Shown piece after piece: positions 52,284 through 53,822 of a stretch of 64,000 nucleotides of DNA. Below the pieces are notes generated by a model, which made no database searches, was not told the DNA's origin, and worked only from the letters and a program-made list of their open reading frames with translations. The DNA comes from Trichosphaerium sp. ATCC 40318 (Eukaryota > Protista > Tubulinea), in contig JALMLS010000309.1 in the NCBI GenBank assembly GCA_038496445.1, forward strand, positions 413,027-477,026. The letters run 5' to 3'. Position numbers and translations under genes: made by a program. How positions within the stretch are numbered: the stretch's first letter is position 1; every line of letters starts with the position of its first letter.

Positions 52284-53822
52284 TTAGCAGTTACACATAC
52301 CCGCGCTATCAGCTGGTGTATCAGTATCCTTGGTTTCAATGTCTGTTTGTAAGAAATAAATGTTAGTCGATGTCTTACATTTTAAAGTTGAACGGAAAAG
52401 AAATCCAAAATAGTGTCAAAGAAGTCATTGAATGCACGTACCAACTGTGAGAGGAGTACGATCTGGATCAGTTGAACCAGATTCGTCGTTTAATGGACCA
52501 GGAAGGGCTGCTGCAACCTGAGAAAAATGAATATTAGCTACGAAGTTGTTTTTGTTTAATTACCTTTCTGAACAATGCTTTGATGTTCAAGCCTGCTTTT
52601 GAAGAGGTTTCTATAAACATAATACCATATTGTTTTGCTTTAGCTTCTCCTTCCTCAAAAGATACAGCCCTAGCCACAAAAATAAGAAGAAGAGTGGAGA
52701 GCGTTTGGGTTGTTTTTTTAAAAAGGTTCCAACAAAAAAGTTATTGGACTCAGGCTCCAAATCGTATGACTGGTAGTTATTGAGTGTTATTTATTAAACG
52801 CACCGTTTATCATCTAAATCAGTCTTGTTACCAACAAGTACCATTATGACATCTGTCCCTCTTTCTGTTCTAACATCTTCTATCCATTTTGCGGTATTAT
52901 TAAAAGTATTTCTATCTGTTTCAAAGAGTTTTAGTGCTTGTACTAAAAAAAAATATATGTGTCTACGTGCATGTAGAACACTAAGCGCTACGTACTTGTT
53001 ATATCATATGTAATAACTGCAACAGATGAATCACGTATGTAACTAGGGATTAGAGAACCTAAAAGCAACAAACAATGAGCAATCAAAGCGGTTTAGCTTT
53101 TTTTTTGAATTTATTTGAAAAATAAATGTCTTCTTGTTGTGCTAATGAACTGATTATGCTATTGTACGTACGCTTTAGCGTGTCAAGGAGAATAAATAAA
53201 AATGATAAAAAAAAAAAATTCAAAAAAAGCAGGTCGCTCTTTGTTTACGTTGCAAAAAAATTACAATTCCTTTACGCGTTTAGGAGCGTTTTTGAGTATT
53301 TTTAAGCTAGTAAAACGACAATTTTCGCTGATTTTTTGTGTCTGTAAAGGATACGAAACGTTCTTGTCTAAAATAACAAATGAGTACGCGAATAAGAAGG
53401 TATTTGGTAGAAAAGCAACAATTTACGAAAAAATCTGTTGAGAATTTTGTTTTTTAATGCTTATAACGCCTACGTACCCAGCGGTATCCCATAGTTGTAA
53501 TCTGACGGTTCTATCCTCCAAATACATTGTTTTTGACAGAAAATCGATTCCGATAGTAGCCTGGGCGGTTTTGAGCGTTGTGGGATCATGACAATGTGTA
53601 TTTTGAGGAAAGATACGTGATTATCATGTATGTCTTTTTTTGTATTCGTGTGACGTGTAGTAAAGGTCATTGATTGCGCACCTGATAAGTTTGGTCGAAA
53701 GTATCATACATGAACCGAGTAATGATCGACGTCTTTCCTACGAACTGATCGCCCAAGAATACCAGTTTATACTTTGCTAGAGGTGTAATATTTGATTGTC
53801 CAGTGGCATTTCCGTCTGTCAT
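52284..53822 (-). CDS. RAB6: Rab6 GTPase, paralog A
   Basis: [65 protein letters not shown]-terminal CNC. Confidence 0.93.

Follow-up and report, generated by a model that had tools for sequence, protein, structure and literature searches.

The window, i.e. the whole stretch of 64,000 nucleotides that was analysed, has a GC content of 36-37% and contains numerous short introns; for the published Trichosphaerium genome, a GC content of 37.7% and 8.7 introns per gene are reported (PMC10521059). On the minus strand, the region 52800-53700 carries a Rab-type GTPase whose coding sequence is interrupted by short introns. When the exon borders are placed according to the positions of the splice motifs, the coding sequence of this gene, called gene A here, is 654 nt long and open over nine exons, and it specifies a protein of 217 aa ending in CNC. 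The predicted protein has the P-loop, the WDTAGQERF and NKTD motifs and, in the CNC end, the C-terminal Cys motif of the Rab6 subfamily; moreover, all 11 PDB matches obtained by comparing its exon-1 peptide with solved structures are Rab6 or Ypt6, and the database fragments closest to the gene bear the JGI name Rab-6A.

Gene A has a head-to-head neighbour, B, which is likewise Rab6-like. The names Rab6A and Rab6B used in the original prediction are labels for the two paralogs of this organism and do not indicate orthology to the human genes. The start codons of A and B (53822 and 53969) are 146 nt apart and a transcript contig of A extends to 53852; thus a very short promoter region is common to both genes. 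Their proteins are 70% identical (153/219 aligned positions), with dS of about 1.3 and dN/dS of 0.14 overall and 0.10 in the GTPase core. Both genes are therefore old and under purifying selection, so that gene A is not a decaying pseudogene; A is an expressed, functional Rab6 paralog of an amoeba-like protist. The seven introns of B occupy seven of the eight intron positions of A, so that the sole structural difference between the two genes is an extra intron in A, located one base into the exon relative to B. Features and coordinates are collected in the table.

Table. Features of the Rab6-like gene pair and of its introns (positions are those of the window).
Feature	Position	Strand	Remarks
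Rab6-like gene A, CDS	53822-52284	-	start to stop codon; based on gene model and translation
Gene A, exons 1-3	53822-53682, 53560-53478, 53367-53355	-	nine coding exons in total
Gene A, exons 4-6	53172, 53058-52996, 52915-52804	-	exon 4, very probably, a single base
Gene A, exons 7-9	52669-52564, 52517-52442, 52342-52284	-	
Microexon of A, 13 nt, ACAAGAACGTTTC	53367-53355	-	last Gly base and codons for Q, E, R and F; preceded by acceptor TTTTAG
GT-AG intron of A with U12-type signals, 182 nt	53354-53173	-	donor and branch motifs; absent from transcript contigs
U12-type donor GTATCCTT	53354-53347 (A); 54468-54475 (B)	- (A); + (B)	agrees with consensus RTATCCTT
Branch motif of A TCCTTGAC	53189-53182	-	starts 165 nt after donor; followed by 9 nt ending in AAG
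Probable one-base exon C	53172	-	first base of Arg codon CGT in QERF-R-SLIPSY
Ordinary U2-type intron of A, 113 nt	53171-53059	-	GTACGTAC...TTGCTTTTAG (GTACGT...TTTTAG); in A only
Next exon of A	53058-52996	-	starts GTTCTCTAATCC, read GT TCT CTA ATC; GT is the last two Arg bases
Rab6-like paralog B, CDS, 206 aa	53969-55351	+	head to head with A; no extra intron
Microexon of B, 13 nt	54455-54467	+	same as in A
Intron of B with U12-type signals	54468-54651	+	ends directly before CGT
Third candidate U12-type intron, 99 nt	31670-31768	-	GTATCCTTAAC...TTCCTTGAT, then 11 nt and CAG

The peculiar arrangement of gene A is found where the conserved QERF stretch is encoded. The exon ending in ...LQLWDTAG is followed by a 110-nt intron and then by the 13-nt microexon, behind which the genomic sequence reads GTATCCTTT, the donor region of the following intron. 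At the 3' end of that intron the sequence is AAG-C-GTACGT (53175-53166, minus strand), with an acceptor and a donor adjoining C 53172 on either side; the second intron closes with TTGCTTTTAG and, directly behind it, the next exon opens with GTTCTCTAATCCCTAGT. In the 296-nt interval that separates the microexon from this exon, no C other than C 53172 is directly flanked by AG upstream and GT downstream. When it is kept, the frame of gene A is open and yields the 217-aa protein; when it is omitted, translation proceeds to QERFVL and then meets a stop codon. Three hallmarks of a single-nucleotide internal exon are present, namely an additional base in the mRNA, AG and GT flanking that base in the genome, and its necessity for the reading frame.

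The probability of such a layout was estimated on block-shuffled sequence. The composite pattern formed by TCCTTRAC, 5-15 nt, AG, one base and GTAHGT occurs once in the window, with 0.003 occurrences expected; the full set of U12 signals occurs twice, with 0.03 expected, and the two occurrences are at the same codon boundary in the two paralogs. Chance is a poor explanation of the layout.

The intron upstream of the single base carries the signals of the U12-type class. Its branch motif TCCTTGAC agrees with the consensus UCCUUAAC (TCCTTRAC), and the likely branch A, at 53183, is 10 nt before the last intron base; the corresponding distance in B is 12 nt. The spacers between branch motif and acceptor are ACGCTAAAG in A and GTCTACCTCAG in B, and neither contains a pyrimidine tract. 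In U12-type introns, the branch site is located 10-20 nt from the acceptor (PMC8199999). Furthermore, the GTATCC donor does not have the G at position 5 that is found in most of the 14 other introns of the two genes. Given the U12 GT-AG donor and branch-site signals, the intron is most likely removed by the minor spliceosome.

Paralog B has the same intron. It reads GTATCCTT...TCCTTGAC, 11 nt and CAG, with CGTTCT immediately after. Although the paralogs are close to saturation at synonymous sites, their U12-type introns have two long blocks in common, and only these: the donor and the branch motif, of 8 nt each, the latter beginning 165 nt behind the former in both genes. The U12-type intron is of common ancestry in A and B and older than their duplication. 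Among the other, U2-type pairs of introns, merely 2-7 nt are common at the starts, with one exception: the intron following ...ALFRK opens with 14 identical nucleotides, GTAATTAAACAAAA, in the two genes (52550-52563 on the minus strand and 55108-55121 on the plus strand). Read-through of this intron leads to a stop after 9 codons, giving a Rab6 without the C-terminal Cys motif; the 14 shared nucleotides could be a conserved splicing signal or could belong to a retained-intron isoform. As for the third candidate U12-type intron of the window, its excision unites one open frame, with ...NKHHPNE| at the joint.

The extra intron of A has the appearance of an ordinary major-type intron. Its donor corresponds to the commonest type in this gene pair, since 7 of the 14 other introns of A and B start with GTACG, and four of these with GTACGT. 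No other copies of it exist elsewhere in the window, and thus there is no sign of an origin from a mobile element.

Eight sequencing runs from four studies contain gene A. Their word shares range from 0.07 to 0.35, and the best ones, about 0.3, are those that a spliced mRNA of the gene would give. Four runs, one per study (X1, X2, X3 and X5), were compared with positions 52200-55450, in all cases as assembled contigs and not as reads. In contigs of X1, X2 and X5, hence in three studies, position 53478 is connected to 53058 through 14 intervening letters. On the plus strand these letters are GGAAACGTTCTTGT, which is the reverse complement of ACAAGAACGTTTC plus one C. The contig of X1 is 666 nt long and comprises nearly the full coding sequence of A. 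The contigs of these three runs are also devoid of the other introns that they span, and so they derive from spliced RNA; the extra intron is missing from the spliced contigs as well. Apart from the two joints around the tiny exons, the splice joints of gene A are visible as joints in the contigs. Over about 650 nt of exon sequence, no other insertions or deletions are observed between contigs and window. X3, the sole run recorded as RNA-seq, covers the first joint only. For B, no contigs are present in the four compared runs, which were picked with gene A as the query.

Another contig of X5 (record 8) is colinear with window positions 53029-53140 and retains the 3' 82 nt of the extra intron; no other intron of gene A is covered by X5 in colinear form, and the record derives either from unspliced RNA or from carried-over DNA. 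Because it is colinear across 53059/53058, no C is hidden at that acceptor. Two further observations concern other parts of the gene. At window position 53769, X2 and X3 differ from X1, X5 and the window by a synonymous A>G change (Tyr18, TAT/TAC on the coding strand), which suggests different strains or alleles. In the intron 52916-52995 (minus strand), an upstream in-frame acceptor, TTTTTTAG, is found before TACAAGC at about 52942, and its use would add 27 nt, i.e. 9 codons; the transcript contigs use the downstream acceptor 52916/52915 only.

Transcripts and genomic layout concur, and they very probably mean that the Arg codon following QERF is interrupted behind its first base, C 53172, and that this base alone constitutes an exon. 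An exon of one base between an intron with U12-type signals and a U2-type intron was what the original prediction had put forward, from the letters of the sequence. Every coordinate and motif that it named is present; inclusion of the C was said to restore QERF-R-SLIPSY and its skipping to shift the frame into a stop, as is indeed the case on translation; and the claim that B has the same U12-type intron followed directly by CGT TCT is borne out by the sequence of the paralog. The mRNA was expected to read ...CGTTTC-C-GTTCTCTA..., and this string is matched by the contigs of three runs from three studies. An mRNA without the extra C was named in advance as an outcome that would overturn the proposal, and the contigs carry the C.

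The extra C is identical to the base that precedes it in the mRNA (TTTC-C), so that the mRNA taken alone is compatible with a one-base exon, with a 14-nt exon or with an inserted base. The 14-nt exon implies an error in the genome assembly: the true sequence before GTATCC would be TTTCC, and a 14-nt microexon would be followed by one intron of 296 nt, with no one-base exon at all. The contigs, with their 14 letters ending in CC, would fit this genome equally well; besides, the interval 53181-53398 is covered as unspliced sequence by none of the four compared runs, and no second assembly of the locus is on record by exact ORF look-up. However, contigs and window differ by 0 insertions or deletions over about 650 nt, and the resulting intron would begin with a U12-type donor but have no U12 branch motif within 20 nt of its 3' end. 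An entire U12 branch site homologous to that of B, with its AAG, would go unused together with the single base and the perfect GTACGT behind it, a combination for which 0.003 occurrences are expected per window, and the phase of the intron would differ from that of its homolog in B. An assembly error is accordingly considered highly improbable. The same unused branch site and acceptor, one base and GTACGT would be a coincidence also if the base were inserted at the RNA level, i.e. if TTC were joined directly to GTTCT and an editing activity then doubled the neighbouring base as C. The identity of the extra C with the preceding one is what would be expected from such a process; conversely, the gene is nuclear and has eight spliceosomal introns, no further inserted base is seen in the about 650 nt of mRNA compared, direct joining demands a hybrid intron with a U12 donor and a U2 acceptor, and the genome has a C between an acceptor and a donor exactly where one is needed. 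This explanation is hardly credible.

It can also be supposed that the one-base exon is real and that the major spliceosome excises both flanking introns, in which case the U12-like motifs would be relics. Intron 53354-53173 has GT-AG ends, its TTGAC fits a loose U2 branch consensus too, and conversion from minor to major type has been documented in Amoebozoa (PMC10639083). However, GTATCC is without the position-5 G mostly present in the 14 other introns of the gene pair; the donor and branch octamers are intact in both paralogs at a dS of about 1.3, in contrast to the remainder of the intron, which has diverged; and a branch-to-acceptor spacing of 10 and 12 nt with no pyrimidine tract is the pattern of U12-type introns (PMC8199999). 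Removal of both introns by the major machinery is thus very unlikely, and the preferred reading is still a one-base exon flanked by introns of two types.

Some predictions on the mechanism can be derived from this arrangement. Where only one base separates a minor-type acceptor, with its branch site 10 nt upstream, from a major-type donor, simultaneous occupancy of the two sites would be implausible, and thus the introns would most likely be excised successively, by intron definition; exon definition would not be possible across a single base. Either order of removal would lead to the same mRNA, and no half-spliced form is seen among the contigs. If the U2-type intron were excised first, the U12 acceptor AAG would be left in front of CGTTCT, which is the situation of paralog B. 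If the U12-type intron were excised first, TTC would be ligated to C, leaving C|GTACGT as a usable donor, like a recursive splice site. Conversely, skipping of the C would require a hybrid intron that opens with a U12-type donor and closes with a U2-type 3' end, and neither spliceosome would be expected to handle such an intron; U12-donor/U2-acceptor pairs are not known to be spliced in mixed U12/U2 arrangements such as those of MAPK8/9. This incompatibility may explain the clean inclusion of the C. Of these points, the dependence on the minor spliceosome, the sequential removal and the protection from skipping are inferred. It can be proposed tentatively, with the chances rather against it, that the mixed flanks bar skipping of the C, that the one-base spacing fixes the order of removal, and that the output of Rab6A depends on the minor spliceosome.

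Two further roles had been suggested for the locus in the original prediction. A regulatory switch finds no supporting data, as a form skipping the C is seen in none of the contigs, which contain the productive form alone and, as assemblies, drop rare variants. The view of the locus as an intermediate of U12-to-U2 conversion is rejected, because the C would be lost, and with it the reading frame, if the two introns were fused.

The origin of the arrangement was also considered by searching for relatives. A scan of metagenomes for QERF codons followed by GTATCCTT returned 19 loci, all of them chance matches in unrelated, mostly GC-rich DNA, with 0 Rab genes. Exact look-ups of three ORFs, namely the exon-1 ORF of either paralog and an ORF of 299 aa at a distance of 8 kb, gave no entry on record. 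Among the homologs retrieved with the exon-1 ORF the closest match is 80% identical, and none comes from the same or a close species; a search of representatives with the exon-1 peptide yielded mostly exon-1 fragments from unrelated eukaryotes, the best full-length one (P0112) being 71% identical to A. At the Rab6 loci L021, L023 and L024 no intron is found at QERF|R, and a further one, L020, is only 521 nt long. These loci therefore do not offer an outgroup for choosing between gain of the extra intron in A and its loss in B. The coexistence in A of two introns one base apart has a consequence for comparative studies: differences of one base in intron position between homologs need not be interpreted as intron sliding.

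One base is the physical lower limit of exon size. Gene predictors miss an exon of this kind and would call gene A broken or mis-spliced. The locus represents a natural substrate for asking how two spliceosomes take turns, and it permits a test of whether incompatibility of splice sites shields tiny exons from skipping; if the mixed flanks did act in this way, the organism could be suitable for the study of minimal exon size and of the hand-over between spliceosomes.

Ratchet points (AG|GT) are the known elements closest to this layout in terms of recursive splicing; they are zero-length exons of very long introns, they leave no base in the mRNA, and the major spliceosome acts at both steps. 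Gene A is similar in that an acceptor is followed by a donor, in that a segment would be taken out by two consecutive reactions and in that, with the U12-type intron removed first, a 5' splice site would be re-formed after the first ligation. It differs since one base is kept, the introns are of 182 and 113 nt only, and two types of spliceosome are implied; the base retained in the mRNA excludes a recursive splice site in the strict sense. Recursive splicing at zero-length exons has been discussed in connection with a plant one-base exon (PMC4674806).

Minor and major splice sites close to each other on one pre-mRNA, acting in turns or in competition, are also known from U12/U2 twintrons and interlocked sites, as in prospero, MAPK8/9 and TMEM87 (reviewed in PMC8329584). 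In those genes the sites are nested or competing and give rise to different isoforms; conversely, in gene A the introns stand side by side, both are removed and one product is seen. A twintron is not present here, as 53354-53173 and 53171-53059 are adjacent with no overlap. The reviews on crosstalk between the minor and the major spliceosome deal with nested or competing sites and describe no two obligatory introns one base apart, and a full-text search of the literature returned no paper in which one-base exons and U12 are connected.

In the searchable literature there are two nuclear one-base exons, those of Arabidopsis APC11 and of Fusarium CYP621A. The former is constitutive and internal (Guo and Liu 2015, PMC4674806). 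Like the exon of gene A, it is needed for the reading frame and had been missed by annotation, and a sequential removal of the flanking introns has been proposed for it too (PMC4674806). However, no U12-type intron is described at APC11, and its proof comes from mutagenesis and reporter assays in a plant (PMC4674806), whereas the support for the exon of gene A consists of transcript contigs from a protist. The exon of Fusarium CYP621A, presented by its authors as the second example (Nelson and Syed 2026, PMC12940212), resembles that of gene A in being part of a conserved motif and in having support from public RNA data. In CYP621A, the base is G, within AGGGT, and it is conserved in 24 genes (the abstract gives 20 orthologs), with no involvement of the minor spliceosome (PMC12940212), whereas in gene A it is a C found in one gene of one genome. 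With respect to these two systems, and within the searchable literature, C 53172 would be the first one-base exon in a protist and the first one beside a U12-type intron.
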